A stretch of 64,000 nt of DNA, from contig JBLWGC010000051.1 of NCBI GenBank assembly GCA_048772705.1, forward strand, positions 304,268 to 368,267, in the 5' to 3' direction. The notes beneath the pieces are model-generated. The model did not search any database and was not told the origin of the DNA. It saw nothing but the letters and a program-made list of their open reading frames with translations. This stretch comes from Leidyana gryllorum EB-2025a (lineage: Eukaryota > Protista > Apicomplexa). How positions within the stretch are numbered: position 1 is the stretch's first letter; every line of letters begins with the position of its first letter. Made by a program: the position numbers and the translations under genes. Positions 1 through 16,100 of the stretch are shown one piece after another.

Positions 1-3000
1 ACTTCGGCCACAGTAACGGGGCTATGGGAGCGGCACAACTCATCAAAGCTTTAATGACGATCCATCATCGCGTCGTGCCTGCGCTCCTCGGATTCAAGCA
101 ACCTCATCGCTTCCTGGGAGACGTCAAGAAATACTCTGTCATTCTGCCGACTGAGAACACACCACTTCGCAGCGATGGTCATCCCATTACTGTTCTTATG
201 AACTCCTTTGGAATGGGCGGCGCAAATGGAAGTGTTATCATCAGTGGGGTGAGCGATAGCAGAGTTCGCGAAGAAGACCTCAAGTACCCGAGCACCGACG
301 AGGCGTTCCTTCAATGTCCCTCTGCTCATCTGCCTTGGTCTCCTCCTGACGCCCTCGTTGCTGCCAGTGCCTTGAGCAATGACCTCGCCCATCCCACTGC
401 GGATCTTGACGAGCTGCTCAGCATCGTGGCTAAGGCACCCAACCGGGTCAACTTCCTCAGCTCTTGGCACCGGATGGTCGACAGCACTCCAGAACTGAGA
501 GACTACAATATCCTCATTGTAGCTGGAGGACCAGTCTCAGACCTCATGAAACAGCTGGTTGACCGATTGTTTGAGAGGCGCGAGTACAGTCGTATCACCG
601 TGATCTGCCAGAGGAAATACTACACACCCTTCGAGAGCGACTGGCCGTTCCCCATACGCAGTGCTGACGAGGAGTTCTCCCGTTTACAATGGGTTGCAGT
701 CGAGCCAAGTGTGGATACAAACTTGCCTGTCACCCCTGATGCTTTCGACTCTGTGTTTGTTATCCCACGAAGTCAACTGTTGGGAGTTCCCTACGCCCTG
801 TGTCGAGATGATGTTCAAATGGTCAAGTTGTGTCTGCCGCTCCTCTTGGAATCTCGCGAAATTCAAGTCCTTAGTCATGCTTACAGCGATCCTCAACTGC
901 TTTTCTTGACAGAAGGGAAGCTCAATTGCGTACCCCGACCTCTAACTGTGGAAGAGGTCAGCCGCATGGCTTCCCCTCAGCTGCACGGAGGCGTCTGGGC
1001 CCGTTTAATCATCGAGAGGATCCTCACAGAGCTGAAAGGCGGCCGTCGTATAACGATCCATCGCCACGGCCTTATCATGAACAATGAGTTGTTGTCCAAC
1101 GTCATGATGGCTATGCTCGAGACTGCTGTCCGAGCAGGACAAGTAGTAGATGGCGCTCCTCTGCTGGTGTCGAACGTTCAGTCCCTCATCGAAGGTCTGT
1201 GTGACTACAATAGCGAGTACTGGAAGGCGACCAACTTTGAAGGGGTTCTGTACACTAACTTGGTGTCTCGCACACCTTACACGCGACAACATTTGGTTTT
1301 GGATCTGACCCTGTTGGGATTGAACGTTGATGTGGTGCCGCTTGAAGCGGTCTTGCGGGAGGCCAAGAACGCCAACAGCAACTCGGGAACTCTTGTTTCG
1401 ATGACCATTCATCGCATGCTGGCTCCGCATCTCACGTCGCCGCAGACTACTCCTGTAACGTTCGGTGGATACTGTCCAACGTCTGTGGAGGCCGTGTCCG
1501 CGGTCCACCTGCGTATGCCTACAGTGACGCTGAAGCGGGGCTTCCCCTTCCGCACCCCAGTTGATGCAACGATAAGTGCGGAGAAGATCCTGGGGGCTTT
1601 GTACACGGCTGGAGCATTACCGCGTAATCGCCCGCTCAGCGCAGTGACACTGGCTGTACTCAAGGCTTTCAGCCATGCGGCCAGTGCTGCCAATCTCAGC
1701 AGCCACGGTATCGCCATGTTGAGGTTGATGCTCTGTCACTGTGTCCAGAACCTGGAAGTATGTGCCGCATTAGAAGAGGCAGGCGTACAGCCGGCGTATA
1801 ACCAAGGATCGTCTACCACTGACGCTCTGCAACCCGTTTTCGTAATTGGAATGGACCGCCTGTCGAATCTGTTGGTAGCCAATATGTTGTTGGCAGACAA
1901 GGAGCGGTTCCGGTCTCCTGGGTTTGGTCGAATGATGGCCCTGTTTGGTCCCATAGGCCATCTCAAATGGGATGAGGATGAGCCAATTTGGCCAGCAATC
2001 ACTCGAGCTTGGCAGAACTTTGACAAGGCGCAGGCCTATGTCGAAGATTCCATCCAGACACTGAAGAACATTGTTGGCACCGACTATGAGTGCTTGTTCC
2101 CTGACAAGGAGGAACAGCCATGGGAAGACACTCTGCTTCTGGAGTTCATGGGGTTGAACCAAAGTTATATGATGAAGTTCCAGATCGATGTGACGCAAGT
2201 CATGAAAGACCATATGCTGGAAGCCTACAAACTGCACAGAATGATGCTCGGACTGCAGCTACATCGCATGAAATTCAAGTGTCGGCCACTTGATGGACAG
2301 CATGTGGTTCTCACCTCGCCATACCACTTACTCGGCCTGAAAGAGCTCATGACCACCTATCCAGATTGCCGGATAGTCTACATCACTAGCTCCATAGAGT
2401 CCGCCTTGCACTTGAACATTCAAGTTTCTGAGCGATTCCAGTACAATCTGCGTCGGACCTACGACTTGGGAGAGATTGTGAGAAGCCAACGAAAAGTATT
2501 GCGAGAAGGCATCGGGGCTGCCCTCCCACAACTGAGACAACTGAGTGACAAACAGCTCTTCGTGGTGCGGCCGGAAAGCATTTTCGAGAACAGTCGTTCC
2601 TTGTTATCCTCATTGCGTGCCTGGTTGAACATTCCGAGAACTGAGCCTCTGCCAACGAGCTGTACCCGGGCGTTGTCGGAAGTGGTATTGGACCAGCTGC
2701 TCCCCCACTCGATGGATCATCGCAGTCGTGGACGAGTCGCCCTGATCAGTCAAGCTATGCAACACATGAGTGAGGCTAGTGAGGAGCAATTGGCAGAGAC
2801 GCCTTTGACCTTCGAAGCCCCGCGCGGCACTGATGAGTACTTTGCGTGCCTTCAGGTCGCTGCTTCGAAGAAACTGACCAGCGCGACTCTCCGAAAGGCA
2901 CTTCAACACCTCAGCGTCCCTGTGGCCGCACCTGGGGACGACCCAACGGAAGTCATCCGCCATTACATCACTAATCTGATCCCGACTTTGTTCCAGATTG

Positions 3001-5614
3001 AGGTGATCGAAGGGACCAAACCCAGATCGCGGATAATACTGACTGGCGCTGTTGGCTTTTTGGGAAGATACGTTCTGCACTCACTCCTTCAGAAAGACTT
3101 GGACAGCTACACAGGACACAAGAATACCAAAGTGACATGTTTGATCCGAAATAACCAGAAGATGACAGCACGCGAGCGGTTGTTCGCGGCCTTCAATGAG
3201 GCTGGGCTACCGACCGACGAGCTCAGGACCCCTCGGGTGGAAGTGATTGTCGCAGATCTGGAGAGAGACCGATTCGGGTTGTCGAACGCGATGTATACAG
3301 AGCTCGCTGAGACCACCTACTGCATCTATCACACAGCTGGAAAAGTGCATCCTCTGGCAGATTTCAAGGATCTCGCAGGACCCAATGTTCACGCAACATT
3401 CCAAGTTGCCAAGTTGCTGGTGTACTCTGGCTGTGAACGGATGAACTTTGTCTCGTCGGTGATTGTGTACCCCGAGGCTACTCAGGGAGCTCCACATCTC
3501 GACTTCTTCCCGGAGAGTCAGCAACCCACACCATTCACCCAACTCGCAGATTTCCCGTAAGTGATGCTAAGTTTTGCTATATATAGACAATGAATCATGA
3601 TGGTTGCAGAGTTGCGGGCAATGGTTACGCATGGGCAAAGCAGGCTGCCGAACTGATGATGCAAGTTCTCAGCGAGAGAATGGATCTTCCCATCGCCATC
3701 TATCGCTTCCCCCACGTGTTTGCAGCTGCCAATCCTCCTCGTTTGAATGCTGATGATCCCATCACCGACATTGTCCAGGTGGCAATCGAAACTGGGCTTC
3801 TGACTGAGCGTATCATTTCCTGGACCAATGGCGTTACAGTGGATGATGGCGCACGATTGATGGTGGAGGTGAGTTTGGTGTACAGAATTGACTGTTATTG
3901 ATCCCTTTTGCAGATCTCTATGAAGACGGCGGCCCACAGCGCTCACAACTCCGACGCCCCTAACACCAATACATATCACATCTGTCGCGGCAGCCACCCG
4001 AGTTCTTTCTCGAACGCGGAGGAAACGCTGGATCTCGCTCGCACAGTTGGCATACCGATTGACGTGGTGGAGGATGACGTCTTTGTCAAACGGGCGACTG
4101 AAATGAACCCTGGCAGTAAAGCTATGGTGTTCTATAGTTTCGCTCGCGACATGATGGACATCCGGGGTCCTCAGGTGCGCAAACGGCGGGCGCTGACGGA
4201 GAGTGAAACACTCTGCAACACGAGAGCCCTAAATGCGCATACTACATGGACTCCCAGCTCCGAGCTGTTCGCCGGTTTGATACGTCAAGTTCTGATGACT
4301 CGGCAATTGAGTATGAATTCGGCCATCTCGTCATTGGACGGGCACAAAATCATTCAACTTTGTCACCACGCTGTCCGCAATGTATTGGGTGCCGATGTGT
4401 GGAGAGAATTGGAGGAGACATTCCAGGATCGATCTAAGCGAACTCTTTTGGATGATGAGAACTTCTTGATGGAGCCCCTTGAGATCTTCCGGAGCGAAGC
4501 CTCTCAAAAAGCCAATGCTTTGGGTCGCATCTTTGCGCGAAGATTCGTACAGCAATGGTATTGCAACTTGATGCTTATGCAACTGGCGGAGAAACGGGAT
4601 CCGTCGCTGCTCACCCTACCCATCGTGGAGAAACCCGTTTTCATCGTTGGACTGAACCGAAGTGGAACTACGTACTTGTACCATGCATTAGCCCGCGATA
4701 CGTCAGTGTTCAGAGCTCCCACCCTAATGGAACTGATGATGCCCTACGGTACTGATGGGGTCTTCTTGCCGCAACCGGGCGAGACCAGTCCCGCTCCGTT
4801 ACTGCCGTGTGATCTGGAGTCATACGCAGAGGACCCACGGCGCGAAGTCTGCCAGATGCATCTCAAGTGGGCGAGCGTCCCTAACTGGGATGTAATCCAC
4901 CAGTCCCACGCGCAGCTCCCAGAGGAGGATTACCTGATCTTCGATCATTCCGGACGAACGTTCTCCTTCCCGATCGCATATGACGCAGCAGAGTATACGA
5001 GATGGTTGGAGGCGAACGACTACGCGGAGTTGAGAAGGGGATACAAAACGCACATAAGATTCCTCAGACACCTCCAACGCCAGAGAGAAACTCCCCGATG
5101 GCTGATCAAGGGACCCTTCCATATGATCACAATGGACACTCTCTTCGAGACGTACCCAGATGCCAAAATCATCTGTCTGCATCGGAGTCCGGTGGCATCA
5201 GTGGAGTCGTGGCTCAATTTGGTTCTGGCGTTCCGGAAAACTCTGTCGGACAGCGAGGACCACACTTTGTGGGCCCACGAGGAAGTGCAGCGCGAAGCGT
5301 TGATGATGGAGAGGTTCCAGAAATGGCGCGACGCGAATCCCGAGTTGGCGAGTGAAAGAGTCCTTGACGTCCACTTCAACCGGATGATAAAGAGTCCGGG
5401 CGATACCGTCAAAGAAGTTTATGACTTCGTGGGAGAAAAGTACGACGACACGGTGGCCAGCCTGCTGGAGGGATTTGAATGCGAGGATGGAAACTGGCGT
5501 CTTCAGAAAGGCACTTTGAATCGAAAAGAGCCTCTGTTATACTTTGGCTTAACAGAAGAGGAAGTGAATAAGGCTTTCGCAAAGTGCCGCTTGCACAGCT
5601 CCTCCACCAACTAG
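1..5614 (+). CDS. Type I PKS/FAS-like multidomain protein, 5'-truncated: ketosynthase C-terminus, degenerate reductase, degenerate sulfotransferase, thioester reductase (NAD_binding_4), sulfotransferase
   Basis: KS motifs FGHSNGAMGAAQLIK and NSFGMGGANG; reductase ILTGAVGFLG (3036) and GYAWAK (Tyr codon 3626); sulfotransferase PVFIVGLNRSGTT (4634), WLIKGPFH, HRSPVASVES. Introns 3557-3609 and 3869-3913 join three ORFs in frame (~1,840 codons in window). Confidence 0.88.
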
Positions 5615-8521: not shown

Positions 8522-10126
8522 TCATAGCTCTAGAGTCTCCAGACGCTTGAAGAGAACATCTCCTGTAGTCACATCTGCCCCCGTCACTAAGTTGTTAGTG
8601 CTCTGCAACTCCCAAAGGTATTTGCGAGGAGAGCCGAATCGACGGAAAATCTCGTCACAGGCAGTGGGTATGATGGGCCACAGGAAGTGAGCAGCCAAGT
8701 ACACCATTTCCATGCAACTCCGTATCACACGTCTCTTCTCGTCCACATCTGCGATCTTCCAAGGAGCTTTCTCGGTCAGGTATTGGTTGGCTTGACGACA
8801 AATTTGCATTCCGGCGCTGCAGAGGTCCTGCAGGGCGAAAGCTCCCATAGCCTTCTCGGCCGTATTGTAAATTGTCGGCAAATCCACTAAAACTTCACAT
8901 TCTCCGACGTCGGGCACTTTGCCATCACTAGCCTTGCCACACAGGGCAGTAACTCTGTGCACCAAGTTGCCCAAAGTGGAGGATAAGTCGCTATTGTTCA
9001 GATTAAGCAACGCTTCAGCGCTGAATTTCACATCTGCACCGTAGGTGCCCTCGTGGACCATATAGTATCTGTGGTGGGAATGGTGGCCAACGCAAACACA
9101 CTTGACGACTCACCTGAAGGTGTCTGACCCGGTAATGGATAAGCACTGCATCGGGTCAATCACATTGCCGAACGATTTGGACATCTTGCTGCCATCTACA
9201 GCTTGTACAAAACCGTGTCCAAAAACCCTGTTAGCTGTGGGAAGCTTGGCAGCCATGAGCATAGCAGGCCAGATCACACAGTGAAACCAGATGATGTCCT
9301 TTCCAATGATGTGCACATCAGCGGGCCAGTACTTGTAGTCATCGTGCTTTGGGTCATGCAGCGAGATGGCTGAGCAGTAATTGCTCAGTGCATCAAACCA
9401 GACATACATCACGTGAGTGTCTGAGCCTGGAACTGGGATTCCCCATTTTAAATTTGTTCTCGAAACACTCAAGTCTTCCAGTGGAGCCTTCTCCAGTCGC
9501 GCGACCAATTCGTTTCGTCGGGTGGCTGGCTGCACGTAATCTGTGTTCTTCAAGAGGTCCAAGACAGCGTCGTGATATTTGGACATTCTGAAAAAGTAAG
9601 ACTCTTCGTTCCGTCTCTCGAAAGGCTTCCCGGTGTCCGGGTCTTTGTAGTTGGTAGCCGCAGCGTCCCGCTCCGACAGGAAGTTCTCTTCACGAACGTT
9701 ATACCACCCCTCATATCTGTCGAGGTATATGTCTCCGTTCTCCTCGACCCGCGTCCACAGCCATTGGGCGAAGGCTTTGTGTTCGGCTTCCGTAGTTCTA
9801 ATGTATCGGTGATCACTAAGATTCAGGTTGGCGTTGAGTTGCTGAAAGAATTTCACATTCCGCTCGCACAACTCCAACGGAGTGATTCCTTGCGCTTCCG
9901 CAGTATTCGCTATCTTTTGACCGTGCTCGTCACTACCAGTGACATACTTGGTGTCGCGACCCGCAATAGTATGGTACCGGGCAATCACATCAGCAGTGGC
10001 GAACTCGTAGGCGTGGCCGACATGAGGCGGTCCATTCAGGTATGCAATAGCAGTTGTCAGGTAAAACTTTTGCTCCTTAACCTGCTCTCTCTCCTCATAG
10101 GTCAGTGTCTTGGCGCACTCCACCAT
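8522..10126 (-). CDS. MARS: Methionyl-tRNA synthetase (short MetRS1/bacterial-like type)
   Basis: YLTTAIAYLNGPPHVGHAYE (HIGH), YVWFDAL, KMSKS; anticodon-binding domain in ORF 8522-9061; one intron near 9070-9113. Confidence 0.95.
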
Positions 10127-10198: not shown

Positions 10199-13100
10199 CT
10201 AAGGGTTGAGACCAAACTCGGCTGCTCTGCAAAGATTGTAGTACTCTCCATTCACAATCTTGATCAGCTCCTCATGGCTACCCACTTCCACAACAGTACT
10301 CCCAACAGGTCGACTGTACAGATCATAGCCTTTCTTCAACACCACAATCATATCAGCATTCCTGATGGTACTCAGACGATGGGCCACAATGATGATGGAC
10401 CTCTGCCGTCTTTGCACTTCTTCTTTCATGATACAATCCAGAGTGTCCTGGACCAGCTTCTCACTCATCGGATCCAACGCACTAGTTGCCTCGTCCAGTA
10501 AGAGAACATCGCTGTCACGCAGAAGCGCACGCGCAATACTAATCCGCTGACGCTGACCGCCACTCAGTTTCTCTCCTCTCACCCCAACAACAAAGTCATA
10601 GCCGCCAGGCAAGTCCATGACAAAGTCATGCGCGTTCGCTGCCTTCGAGGCCTCAAAGACTTCGTCCGGCTTAGCTTCCATTTTACCGTACCGAATATTC
10701 TCAAAGATCGTAGTATTAAATAAAATGGGCTCCTGAGATACCAAACTCATCCGACTCCGCAGTGAGCGCAAGTTCCAGTTTCGCAGCTCTATCCCGTTGA
10801 TATACACCGAGCCGTCCAGCAACTCGTAGAAACGTTCCAACAAGTGGATCAGAGTTGTCTTCCCGCATCCACTCTCACCCACAATCGCCACTGTCTTTCC
10901 GATTGGCACCTCGAAACTGACATTCGAGTACACGGGGTAAGAAGAGTTCGGGAATGCAAATCGGACTTGGCGAAAAGCAATGTGTGTTATACGACTGTTC
11001 GAACCACACGGGCTCAGCAGCGGAATAACGGCAGTTCGCCTCATTTTGTTGTTGCTAACGACAGATTGATCTCCCTCAAAGGATGACGCGGTGTTCATTC
11101 GGGGACACGGCAAGCTCACAGGCTCCCAGGATTGGCTCGTGTCAGGATTGAAAGACAGCACAGGCAGCTCCAGGGTGCGTCTCCCGCCATCGAGGGGGGT
11201 CCTGCCTCCCGTCTCGAGCCGCGTCCACGGACTGTCCAGGATTCTAACACTCAGATCTCCAGCACGTGACCGGGCTGATCGCAGAGAGATTGATCGCACA
11301 AACTGTTTGCCACCCGGAAGACGAACATCTGGATAGAACTCTTGATCGATCAAACTGAGGTAACGTCTGGCAGATTTCTTGCCACTCGCCGTGTCAATAG
11401 ACGATGTACTCGCTTGACCAACTCCCAATCCCGCAATTATAAGCGTGAAGGTTCCTTGGAGCATCTGATCCATACTTTCAATTCTTCCGTCCGCGAAAGC
11501 TCGTCCCCCGTACCACAACGCCAGAGCTTGCGCTCCGAATTGCAGAAACTGACTCAATCCGTAGAAGAATCCCGTCAGCATAGCTTTAGTGTGCCCCTTT
11601 TCTCGATCGTCGCTCAATAGTTCGTCCATTTGCCGAACCAAAATGGGCTGCAGACAGTTAGCGTCCACGGTACGCCGACAGCTCAAACTCTCAGAGAGAA
11701 TGGAAGTGTATGTGATTCCCATCGCCTTCCGGTGACGCTGAACCTCCTTCTTCCCGAACAAGGAGCGGAAGATCCGAAAGCTGCTAAACTTGTTGATCAT
11801 CACCGTAGGATCAGACATGAACCGCGATTGTATCCAGATGGCGGGAGCCATGGCGATGAAGCCCGCAACTGACACTAAAGCCAATTGATAGTGTGCGAGA
11901 CTGGCTATGACGATAGCTGCCACTACACAAGAGCCATTGCTCAGTAGAATAGACATGTTTTCAAAGGCCCATCCTTTGGCGAGTATAGTGTCGCAAGTCA
12001 GAACATCCAGTATGTAGCCGGGACGCAATTGGGGATGGTCGAAGAATGAAGCAGGAAAGTACAGAACGCGCGACAAGAGTGCTTGCCGCAGATTCCTGAC
12101 CAAAACTGCACCTCCAAAGTCCAGCAAACCATTGTGACACACGTTAACTATCATACAATAGAGAGCCACCCAAAGCAAATCGTGCGTGGGGCCGAGCAGT
12201 CCCGCTTCAATCTCGTAATGCGACGGCGCGCTGAGAACACCCACAAAGTTGGCGAAGCACCATGCGAACAGTGGAAACACAAGACTGAAGACACAAAAGC
12301 AATGATACAATGACGCTCGACGCTGGAGATAAGTTACCCATGAGCGAGAGAAGCCAGCACACTCAATAACACGGTCGGCCACCACGCGCCAAAGAATTTC
12401 AGAATGCGGAACCGGGATGGCTTGGACCCGTTCAGGAAGTCTCCATACATATTGGGCGGAAAGGACAACTTTGCTGGATCGTCTTCCACATCAATCGTGG
12501 CAGCCTCGTGAACGTATTCCTCACGCAACAGCTGATATGGTTGTGATCTCGCGATCAATTTGTCGATCGCACTTGTGGCAAGAACTGAACGCGGAGTCTG
12601 ATACATCAAACACCCCAGACTTACGCTCTGTCGGACTCTGTTTTGGCAGCCACGACGGAGGATTGGTGAGATGCGTGGGCGATTCGTCCAAATGCAGCGA
12701 TGATATCGGTGACTCCGAGCCTTGGGACACGATACTGATGTCAACTGGAGGACATTTGTACTTGTCCAAATCGAGGCGTTGTCCCCTACTATATGCCACC
12801 TCTTCTGTTCGAGCACTAACTCGTTCGTCAGTGTTAGACGAGATTGAGGTTGAAGAACTAAAGTAGTTCTCCTCGGGCACCGGCAAACCCTCTGGCACCC
12901 AAGAGTCCCCCATGAAAGCGTTCATACCATCGGGCACAGCGAAGGGCATTGAGACATGACGACGGCGGGCTTGTTGGGTCGCTTCTTCGCCAAAGGCTTC
13001 GCGGGCTGCCTCCAAAGCGATCTCGGGGACGCTGCCGCGGAGCTGTCTTCGTGACGGCTTGGGAGCCGAATGTGTCGACTCCAACTGAAGTGTTGGGGGC

Positions 13101-16100
13101 GTAGGAGACGGCAAACAACTGTCTGCCGTGGGATCGCCCTCCATGGACTCGCAGTGTTCAGGTGTGGATGCCATCTTTGTGCTGGAGGGTCTCGATTCTG
13201 TCGATCCCACCTGCGAGCGATCTTTTGAGGGGAACCCAGTGGTCGGCGTTCTTTTCGGCTGACGCCCGGCTGGAGATGGTGTTGGGGTGCGATCGTCCCA
13301 GGAAGATCGCACCAGCAGGGGACGCGGCGGATCGGGGGCACAAGAGACAGGGGTGGCCGGGGCAAGTACCCGCCGGGCGGTGACCATGGGAGCCCGACTC
13401 AAGTTCCCCAACCCTTGCACTCTGATCATTGAAGCATATAAGCCGTCCTACAGAGTATACGAGAGTGGTATTCCATCAATACTCACCCCCTCGTCGCTTA
13501 CCTGTTTCATGAGGGACTCGTGCGTTCCTGTTTCGCAGACGAAGCTTCTCACGGAACTATTGACATGGCCAATATTGGCAAAGGTCTGGAATACAACGAT
13601 TCGATCGGCTTTGCGTATGGTGGAGAGTTTATGTGCCACCATTAGGGTGGTACAGCGTCGCTCTTTGACGTATTTGAATATATTATTGAGCACAATCCTC
13701 TCGGACTCATTGTCCAAAGCGGAAGTTGCTTCGTCCAGAACCAGAATCTTGGGTCGTTTGATCAGCGCTCGTGCAATAGCGAGACGTTGCCGTTGTCCGC
13801 CACTCAATTTACTGCCATTGACCCCCACAAGGGTATTATATCCATGCGGTAGCATCTCAATGAATGAATGAGCATTGGCCAGTTTTGCTGCCTCCAGAAC
13901 TTCGGCATCACTTCCGTTCACCTTTCCATGTAATATATTGTCTTTGACACTGGCATTCAGTAATTCCGCATCCTGCCCGACGTATCCGATCTGCGAGCGC
14001 CACTGGTTGACATTGAGCTCTCGCAATGGTCTGCAAACACAGTTTGGAAGACTGATAGAGACGAGTAGGAGGCTCACACTCCATCGATGCGCAAACATCC
14101 CGAAATTGGATCCACAAAACGCATTACTAGTCTAGCTATGGTGGATTTTCCACACCCTGATGGACCAACAAAGGCTGCCACATCGCCTGATTCTATGACA
14201 ATATTCAAGTCGCTGAATACAAAGGCGCCTTGCATTGGCAGAGGAACACCACGCTGCATCGCAAATCCCCCGAGATCAATATAGATAACTCACTTCTTCA
14301 GCAGCTAATTGTGCTTTTGCACTAGCTTTCACCGAAGGACTGCTTGACGTCAATCGATTCAAACGGGTTGAGTGTTTTGCAGTCACTTCCCGTGCAAGCT
14401 TCAGATGCGTGGGTAAACCATGTCCAACTTCCTCTTTGGGTAGAGCCTCCAGATCATACGCATAGACAACATGTTCGAATGTCAGCTTCCCCCGAACCTT
14501 CATGCTTCGTAGGCGACTGCAGCTGCTGCTCGAGGCATTGGATCGATGACGCGGGGAGTGAGAGGTGGAAAGCATTCGGCCCGAATTAGTCAAACACGGG
14601 ATTTTGGAGTTTCGACCCATTACGGCCAACAATGCTTCGACCGCCCCCCGACCCTATCGCAAGATTACGACAGAGACGTGGCGTACCCACCTTCAGAACC
14701 GCATTCAGTGGGGGTGTTGCCTGCCCGAGAGCAAAAGCACCGAATGCCACGCAGAAGAACACCGATATGCCATCTCCAACCGATAAACACCCTGGTGTGT
14801 CCGGCACACACCCCTTTCGCAAGTCTGCCATTAGCATCCTGCCTTGAACCCAAAACCCGAGCGCATAGAAAGCAAATAGACTGCCCATCACCAGGCCCAT
14901 ACCAACCCCCAATATGATGGAACCGGTAGTTGCCGTCTTTAGCGCGGCGTTCGTCGCTATCCCATACTGAGTCACAAACATGCTCTCCAAGCCATAGGCT
15001 ATCATGGTCCTGACATTACTGAGAGCTTCCTCCACCACGGCAGCAGATTCGACGAATGAGCGTCGCAGGGCTTCACTGCAACTGATCAAAGCCCAGTACG
15101 TGAAGGCACCCCCAGCCAGAAGAGCGGGGATCATGCCACTAAGCACCAATGCCAACCGCCAGTTCAAGCTGAGAGCCACGATGTATCCGGCAACGAATTG
15201 CGACAGGAGGATACTCAGCTGCGAGACTGATTTGCAGCGAGGGCTTGCGAACCTACCTGCCCTAATTTGCTGCCCAGTGCAGCTCGTACACAGGTCCCCT
15301 GTTGTGTTACAAGGTCCTCCAGTTCTCCTGCGTTGTAGGAGGAGCAGAAGGCTTGATCTTGGTTGAGGATGGCATGGTAGAAAGTAGCCTGCAGTCTAGC
15401 TAGTTGATTCTCTGCACTCCATTCCAGCAGAGTAGTGCCGGCCCATGAAGCCAGAAAGCTGGCAAACTGATCTAGGATGTGAGAGTTTCGATTCCACTCA
15501 CCCCGGCTAAGGCTTGCATTTCGCACCAAAAATTGATGGAGGGTATATTCTGATCCCGAGCAGCATCCAGAAACTTGCCGGAGAAGAGAACTCCAATTGG
15601 CTGCGAATGCGTCACCGCGATACAACACACATAGACGGGGGCGGGGAGGAGCAGATCAAAGAGAAGATCGAGCACAACACAAAGAACACTCACGGAATCC
15701 CAGTCGGGATCGCGAAGCATTAGCACATAACATCTCGGTGGAACAACGGTAGTACCAGAAGGGAGCCGCTTATGACATTGATGCATATTCCAGCATACGT
15801 GTATTTGCGATCACGTGGGGTCGCGAAACAGAAAAGGGTTCGGTTGAGGTCGTCATCCGGCCGATGCGACTTGGAGGTAGCCAGAGAGGCTTCAGTTGGC
15901 GAGGCAGTGAGGGATGAAAGCGATGTTAGAGATTTCAGACGCGTTATACGTGACCTCTGTGGCTGTATCGAAGCATTAGATATAAGAGGGAGGAAAATTG
16001 TTGATATCTGCAGACGACTCTCCAGAGGGTTGGCTACCGGCTCATTGACACCAAGGAATAAGTCATTGGTCGTTTGCACAGTTCGAGTGAGAGGATGGAT

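Follow-up and report, generated by a model that had tools for sequence, protein, structure and literature searches.

The fusion of a thioester reductase (R) to a sulfotransferase (ST) has been described before in type I polyketide synthase (PKS) and fatty acid synthase (FAS) systems. In the swf clusters of sponge symbionts the two domains form one protein, SwfB, for which an alkyl sulphate product is proposed and unproven (Della Sala et al. 2013, PMC3908369). The same paper states, without naming species, that contiguous R and ST domains occur in coccidian type I FAS. PKS1 of Toxoplasma and Eimeria, which is highly abundant in oocysts, is drawn from FAAL to a terminal ST (Bushkin et al. 2013, PMC3760245, Fig. 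2 legend). Here we analyse a window of 64,000 nucleotides from the gregarine-like apicomplexan Leidyana gryllorum EB-2025a (contig JBLWGC010000051.1; G000:C51:304268-368267 in our numbering). Its positions 1-5614 hold the 3' terminal part of a type I PKS/FAS gene that comprises at least 7,930 codons. This gene also ends in R-ST. The type of ending is known, though uncharacterised; it is widespread among myzozoans and occurs in bacteria as well. What is new is the insertion that precedes the live pair in this gene and in one ortholog: an altered ketosynthase (KS4, marked KS*) followed by a degenerate second copy of R-ST, here called psiR-psiST.

Compared with SwfB, the gene has the same arrangement of R directly followed by an ST of the Sulfotransfer_3 type, in one polypeptide that works with a type I PKS/FAS. 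However, SwfB is free-standing beside the single-module SwfA, whereas here R-ST is fused to a megasynthase with four ketosynthase (KS) domains and follows a dead duplicate. By their published descriptions, coccidian type I FAS and PKS1 share with it the apicomplexan megasynthase, the loading by an acyl-AMP ligase (AL) and the terminal ST, but a KS*-psiR-psiST insertion is described in neither PMC3908369 nor PMC3760245. The thioester reductase (TR) of TgPKS2 carries out a four-electron reduction of acyl thioesters to the primary alcohol; it is preceded by a KS that is inactive in vitro, and takes its substrate from the acyl carrier protein (ACP) before that KS (Keeler et al. 2023, bioRxiv 10.1101/2023.05.23.541938). 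Our gene likewise has a predicted non-condensing KS between its last ACP and the reductase (ACP4-KS4(C-Q-H)-...-R). TgPKS2 as described ends at the TR, whereas here about 870 residues of psiR-psiST separate KS and R, and an ST follows R. Cryptosporidium CpFAS1 and CpPKS1 are similar in being apicomplexan AL-ACP-(modules)-R enzymes with reductive release; this comparison is by description, and an ST is not mentioned in the title of Zhu et al. 2010. Outside this group, CurM (curacin A) and the cyanobacterial olefin synthase (OLS) also carry an ST dependent on 3'-phosphoadenosine 5'-phosphosulfate (PAPS) at the PKS end. Their order is ACP-ST-thioesterase (TE), with sulfation of a beta-hydroxyl and decarboxylative elimination, in contrast to the R-ST without TE found here. 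Mycobacterial Stf-type enzymes differ in being free-standing bacterial proteins of about 400 residues with no fusion to a reductase or PKS.

Live and degenerate reductase-sulfotransferase pairs

Pfam searches with overlapping pieces give the domain order of the megasynthase as AL-ACP-KS-DH-KR-ACP-KS-AT-DH-ER-KR-ACP-KS-AT-ACP-KS*-psiR-psiST-R-ST (DH, dehydratase; KR, ketoreductase; AT, acyltransferase; ER, enoyl reductase). The repeated KS/AT/ACP modules and the acyl-AMP ligase identify it as a type I modular, AL-loaded apicomplexan PKS/FAS. The upstream part of the gene lies on the same contig (G000:C51:285982-304267), where an unbroken open frame of 7,281 codons begins 18,285 bases before the window and runs to position 3557. 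This frame holds an AMP-binding domain, four PP-binding (ACP), four KS, two AT, two DH, one ER and two KR domains, and the GxDS(L/M) serine motif is found in all four ACPs. Recovery of the upstream contig, as the original prediction had advised, has supplied four ACPs as well as the ATs and the domain for loading. Because the N-terminus of the AMP-binding domain is absent from the frame, a further exon upstream is likely. Module 1 (KS-DH-KR-ACP) has no AT, with about 90 residues between the post-KS linker and DH (frame residues ~1300-1450), unlike modules 2 and 3, which each have their own. The features of the window are as follows.

1-280, + strand: C-terminal end of KS4 and post-KS linker (Ketoacyl-synt_C profile 89-118 of 119 at residues 2-31; KAsynt_C_assoc at residues 43-92)
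495-1388, + strand: psiR, degenerate thioester reductase copy (hhalign against an 18-sequence R profile)
1389-1829, + strand: stretch of the dead copy equivalent to the C-terminal subdomain of R plus the helical lead-in to ST (placed by the whole-region hhalign match)
1830-2705, + strand: psiST, degenerate sulfotransferase copy without PAPS-binding residues (BLASTP, Pfam)
2706-3032, + strand: linker before R (no PP-binding match)
3033-3556, + strand: N-terminal half of R, the NAD(P)H-binding Rossmann part, at the end of exon 1 (NAD_binding_4, PF07993, profile 1-145, E 5.3e-27; TIGR01746 E 2.7e-34)
3557-3609, + strand: intron 1, inside R (53 nt, GTAAGT...CAG, phase 2)
3610-3868, + strand: exon 2, catalytic segment of R (NAD_binding_4 profile 174-252, E 2e-07; YAWAK at 3626-3640)
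3869-3913, + strand: intron 2, inside R (45 nt, GTGAGT...CAG, phase 0)
3914-4633, + strand: start of exon 3, with the C-terminal subdomain of R followed by the helical extension at the ST N-terminus (colinear with the Gregarina sp. Poly1 ortholog from exon 3 residue 19)
4634-5449, + strand: ST catalytic core, PAPS-type Sulfotransfer_3 (PF13469; E 3.7e-30, 106.2 bits against a cut-off of 27, full profile 1-216)
5450-5614, + strand: ST C-terminal tail and stop codon at 5612-5614 (translation)

The live reductase has its glycine-rich motif TGAVGFLG at 3042-3065, and the motifs TGAVGFLGR, CLIR, YHTAG, FVSS and GYAWAK agree with the alignment of 18 homologs, so that both the NAD(P)H site and the Ser/Thr-Tyr-Lys residues are in place; behind the Rossmann part, AD stands in R at the site of the GD found in most homologs. 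In the ST, GLNRSGTT (4649-4672), PEED (4919-4930) and HRSPVAS (5180-5200) are conserved across 19 R-ST homologs and include the 5'-phosphosulfate-binding (5'-PSB) and 3'-phosphate-binding (3'-PB) motifs. The terminal domain is thus predicted to be a PAPS-dependent sulfotransferase. The closest solved structures by sequence are PDB 2zq5 (E 1e-15) and 2z6v (E 1.3e-14), which align over the whole ST including both motifs. We take these to be the mycobacterial Stf1 and Stf9; in the PDB file they are named as uncharacterized proteins. The OLS sulfotransferase 4gox is only marginally similar (E 0.012). No TE was found after the ST with Pfam, and the protein ends 55 residues past the ST core. The original prediction of an intact reductase and an intact PAPS-type sulfotransferase, fused to each other, is borne out on all three points.

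The fusion was read from three open pieces on the + strand (3-3557, 3590-3901 and 3908-5614). Removal of the two introns restores the frame at both sites, whereas without splicing a stop follows at 3558-3560. The exons were never joined for the comparison; each was aligned separately with the best homolog, a Gregarina sp. Poly1 protein (3,634 aa, EukProt label). Exon 1 is colinear with it along 1,223 positions, at 31% identity (E 2e-165). With BLASTP, exon 2 aligns without gaps over 86 aa and exon 3 over 550 positions (residues 17-556 of 566), both at 44% identity, and the identity reaches 56% over the ST tree alignment. At junction 1 exactly one ortholog residue lies between the flanking blocks, which matches the prediction of a split codon, and at junction 2 the alignment resumes with one residue of slack. 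The colinear alignment supports the predicted splice model. Since exon 3 encodes the entire ST as well as the C-terminal part of R (the solved Stf-like sulfotransferases align from about residue 189 of this exon), the R-ST fusion is independent of any splice.

Between KS4 and R lie about 870 residues in which no Pfam model scores above threshold, yet this stretch is a degenerate tandem copy of R-ST. A two-species profile of the whole middle region aligns with an 18-sequence R-ST profile over 693 colinear columns (hhalign probability 99.5%, E 5.4e-23; query 71-840 against template 2-771). For psiR alone the match to the R profile has a probability of 89% and an E-value of 2.3e-6 over 269 colinear columns, against an E-value of 0.27 for the reversed-sequence control. 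This part is visible only by profile comparison: BLASTP gave no similarity between the middle region and the R part, an AlphaFold2 model of psiR from a two-sequence alignment was unusable (mean predicted local distance difference test score 34.5), and a feature search of the ESM Atlas returned weak Rossmann-type leads only (TrkA_N / Castor_Poll_mid, score 0.80) that we do not count as evidence. PsiST can be found with BLASTP (E 1e-9 to the terminal ST and also to the ST of the second megasynthase of this genome, on contig C2), and its Sulfotransfer_3 score of 24.4 bits falls below the cut-off of 27. The original prediction had seen no AT, KR or ACP after the KS; indeed no such model matches in this region.

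The losses in the copy concern the residues that matter for catalysis. PsiR lacks the glycine-rich NAD(P)H motif (VAGGPVSD stands at 519-542), and its catalytic GYxWxK reads GGVWAR (987-1004); in psiST the 5'-PSB loop GLNRSGTT has become GMDRLSN (1848-1868) and the 3'-PB motif HRSP has become YITS (2379-2402). The ortholog of Gregarina sp. Poly1 has lost the same cofactor and catalytic motifs. Judged from these motifs, psiR-psiST is predicted to be catalytically dead. Between the two species, identity amounts to 28-31% in the dead copy and to 44-56% in the live domains. Because both species keep about 870 codons open, the sequences argue for retention in a non-catalytic role. The copy is absent from XP_011134163.1 of Gregarina niphandrodes, which is of the KR-ACP-R-ST type.

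The KS in front of the copy is also altered. KS1-3 have the Cys-His-His triad of a condensing enzyme (DTACSS, HGTGT, NIGH), and KS4 is the only one that departs from it: the Cys is kept (DTGCSS), the His of HGTGT is replaced by Gln (EAQANGI), the second His is kept (FGHS, at window 3-14) and the Lys of KxNxGH is lost. With Gln for the HGTGT His and no Lys ahead of the second His, KS4 should be unable to decarboxylate an extender. FGHS was correctly noted in the original prediction, but what the window holds is the last quarter of the KS C-terminal domain and not its half. The last KS of the Gregarina sp. Poly1 ortholog (residues ~1700-1822) retains the HGTG His and has also lost the Lys; the unusual motif LTAFHTP is common to both proteins.

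No PP-binding match was found with Pfam between KS4 and R, so that an ACP directly before R, as in the C2 paralog and most homologs, is missing here. A cryptic or serine-less ACP was considered and rejected, as hhalign of the preceding 170 residues against an ACP-linker-R profile aligned only the first 14 residues of R.

Relatives and genome context

An exhaustive profile-free search of representative proteins with exon 3 gave 1,821 proteins at E-values up to 1e-10, and the domain order of 19 long matches was scanned with Pfam. In 18 of these the protein ends with NAD_binding_4 followed by Sulfotransfer_3, mostly with an ACP directly before. They come from Gregarina niphandrodes (XP_011134163.1), Gregarina sp. 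Poly1, Selenidium, Digyalum, Rhytidocystis, Cardiosporidium (KAF8821063.1) and Chromera (Cvel_19857/Cvel_3734), and from bacteria. The single exception is MFK8186311.1 from a metagenome-assembled genome of Phormidesmis sp., a cyanobacterial PKS that ends DH-ACP-TE-ST, the opposite of the ST-TE order in CurM/OLS. Polyplicarium and Vitrella (CEM36688.1) match by ST similarity, outside the domain-order scan, and so do bacterial proteins of the size of SwfB (836-842 aa; one from Candidatus Palauibacter). The rarity implied by the original prediction is not supported: besides the 18 of 19 long homologs, the ending was published in 2013 (PMC3908369, PMC3760245). It is no discovery in itself, being present in public proteins annotated only as type I fatty acid synthase, such as XP_011134163.1. 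The statement that no enzyme with this ending has been characterised does stand in the searchable literature; in full text we found neither a characterised R-ST enzyme nor a publication that deals with how gregarine PKSs terminate.

A single frame encodes the second megasynthase of the genome, with KR-ACP-R-ST at its end, and this together with the 18 of 19 homologs suggests that the R-ST fusion is a selected unit. Several eukaryotic matches bear names in the style of open reading frames from transcriptome shotgun assemblies (TSA/TransDecoder), from which we infer that R and ST are co-transcribed in relatives. In a tree of ST domains, that of the window pairs with the Gregarina sp. Poly1 ortholog (support 100/100, long stem). 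The C2 paralog groups first with a second Gregarina sp. Poly1 protein, next with a Logan protein and last with G. niphandrodes, which places the origin of both R-ST lineages before these gregarines diverged. The myzozoan group excludes the bacterial proteins; support for the deep split is weak (44/67). On the bacterial metagenome contig (8001-17540) a single-module KS-AT-DH-ER..ACP-R-ST PKS adjoins a gene for a phosphopantetheinyl transferase (PPTase), and the neighbouring genes are Bacteroidota-like and of the type IX secretion system kind (Por_Secre_tail, Omp28).

Within the genome (G000, 15.5 Mb) KS domains occur in only two genes. The second megasynthase (C2:46931-76564) is one uninterrupted frame of 9,878 codons with four KS, ending DH-KR-ACP-R-ST. 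A fused ATP sulfurylase/APS kinase, that is a PAPS synthase, lies about 41 kb downstream (C2:117259-118448, - strand), so the genome check for this enzyme that was proposed in the original prediction has a positive outcome. A third R...ST pair (C202:215051-218870, - strand) stands alone without a PKS, with a WD40 gene upstream; it is split into several short frames with partial domain matches, and is either multi-exon or decaying. The only ACPS-family (PPTase) match in the genome, a weak one, is found 37 kb from it (C202:255091-255324). In the window an ABCB-type transporter (ABC_membrane and two ABC_tran pieces; 10199-14098, - strand) is convergent with the PKS and lies 4.6 kb past its stop. 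It could export an anionic lipid, or the neighbourhood may be coincidental. A Met-tRNA synthetase is encoded at 9110-10123 (- strand).

Release of the chain

The reading that we consider fairly probable is that R makes a primary alcohol at the release end, that ST sulfates it to a long-chain alkyl sulfate, and that the dead copy has a scaffolding or docking role. From the last ACP, upstream of KS*, the chain would be handed to R across KS*-psiR-psiST. There it would be reduced in two NAD(P)H steps (four electrons) to the primary alcohol, after which the fused ST would move sulfate from PAPS to the C1 hydroxyl; the dead copy would be kept for scaffolding or docking and not as a catalyst. Release as an alcohol is plausible given the precedent of the TgPKS2 TR (bioRxiv 10.1101/2023.05.23.541938) and the alkyl sulphate proposed for SwfB (PMC3908369). 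Alcohol release followed by sulfation appears to be the most economical reading and the best available mechanism. The intact motifs of R and ST, the conservation of their fusion and the PAPS synthase as a source of the sulfate donor speak for it. Several points weigh against it. No ACP lies beside R, the nearest being about 1,350 residues upstream and before KS*. Because the final elongating module is KS3-AT-ACP without KR, R would receive a beta-keto thioester. Reduction by four rather than two electrons cannot be read from the sequence, and the predicted splicing of the R introns rests on homology and splice signals. Moreover, there is no R-ST enzyme with a demonstrated product, and heterologous expression of a swf cluster gave no new metabolite (PMC3908369).

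It might be argued that ST sulfates a secondary hydroxyl (beta or mid-chain) instead, on the ACP-bound chain as in CurM/OLS or once the chain is free, with R only releasing an aldehyde or alcohol and the sulfate not on C1. Many R domains halt at the aldehyde, and a KR that would furnish a hydroxyl is part of the last module in the C2 paralog and in most homologs; the last module of the window gene has none and hence offers no beta-hydroxyl. Likewise the weak similarity to 4gox would fit, but the ST is far nearer to the Stf-like enzymes, no TE follows it, and the strict order of R before ST in 18 of the 19 homologs agrees with the two domains acting in turn on the released end. Overall we consider sulfation of a secondary hydroxyl unlikely. 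A reading as a CurM-like ST-TE termination was ruled out by the domain order, the missing TE, the missing KR in the last module and the weak 4gox similarity.

We give still less credence to a transient sulfation, in which the sulfate leaves to give a terminal alkene, an ether or alkyl transfer, or a cyclisation, so that the final product is not a sulfolipid. CurM and OLS use sulfate as such a leaving group. The 18 R-ST proteins, however, all end at ST, with no partner domain for elimination or transfer behind it. Widespread alkyl sulfates are not reported where swf clusters occur, which would agree with a transient role, but alkyl sulphates escape the standard lipid work-up and would have been missed (PMC3908369). 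Very improbable, in our view, is that the terminal R-ST is unused, through alternative termination at the 3558 stop or because it is enzymatically silent, with release by another route. Unspliced RNA would indeed stop at 3558-3560, and R has the unusual AD. Against this, all catalytic and cofactor motifs are intact, and the contrast in identity to the ortholog between the live domains and the dead copy is the pattern expected of purifying selection for function.

Significance for apicomplexan polyketides

Apicomplexan PKSs have yielded no identified product in over 20 years (bioRxiv 10.1101/2023.05.23.541938). We tentatively extend the alcohol-sulfation reading to a broader proposal, possible though doubtful at this stage: psiR-psiST might be a selected pseudoenzyme module that acts with KS* as a docking or gating platform, and the products of apicomplexan PKSs could be alkyl sulfates, perhaps located in cyst or oocyst walls. 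On this proposal psiR-psiST and the non-decarboxylating KS would together take the chain over from the distant ACP and deliver it to the live R-ST. That the products could be alkyl sulfates is suggested by both megasynthases ending in R-ST and by the recurrence of this ending in gregarines, chromerids and, from the literature, coccidia.

The conserved dead duplicate is an unusual tandem pair of pseudoenzymes inside an assembly line, and may explain the organisation of release modules of the KS-TR type, as in TgPKS2. The genome offers a compact test case, with two megasynthases only, both ending in R-ST, and a PAPS synthase. Within the uninterrupted frame of the C2 paralog, ACP-R-ST should lend itself readily to expression. 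The termination module predicts a specific and easily overlooked chemotype, namely sulfate esters with a diagnostic fragment at m/z 97. Lipid analysis based on saponification misses alkyl sulfates and, if the prediction is true, such lipids might contribute to the walls of cysts and oocysts.

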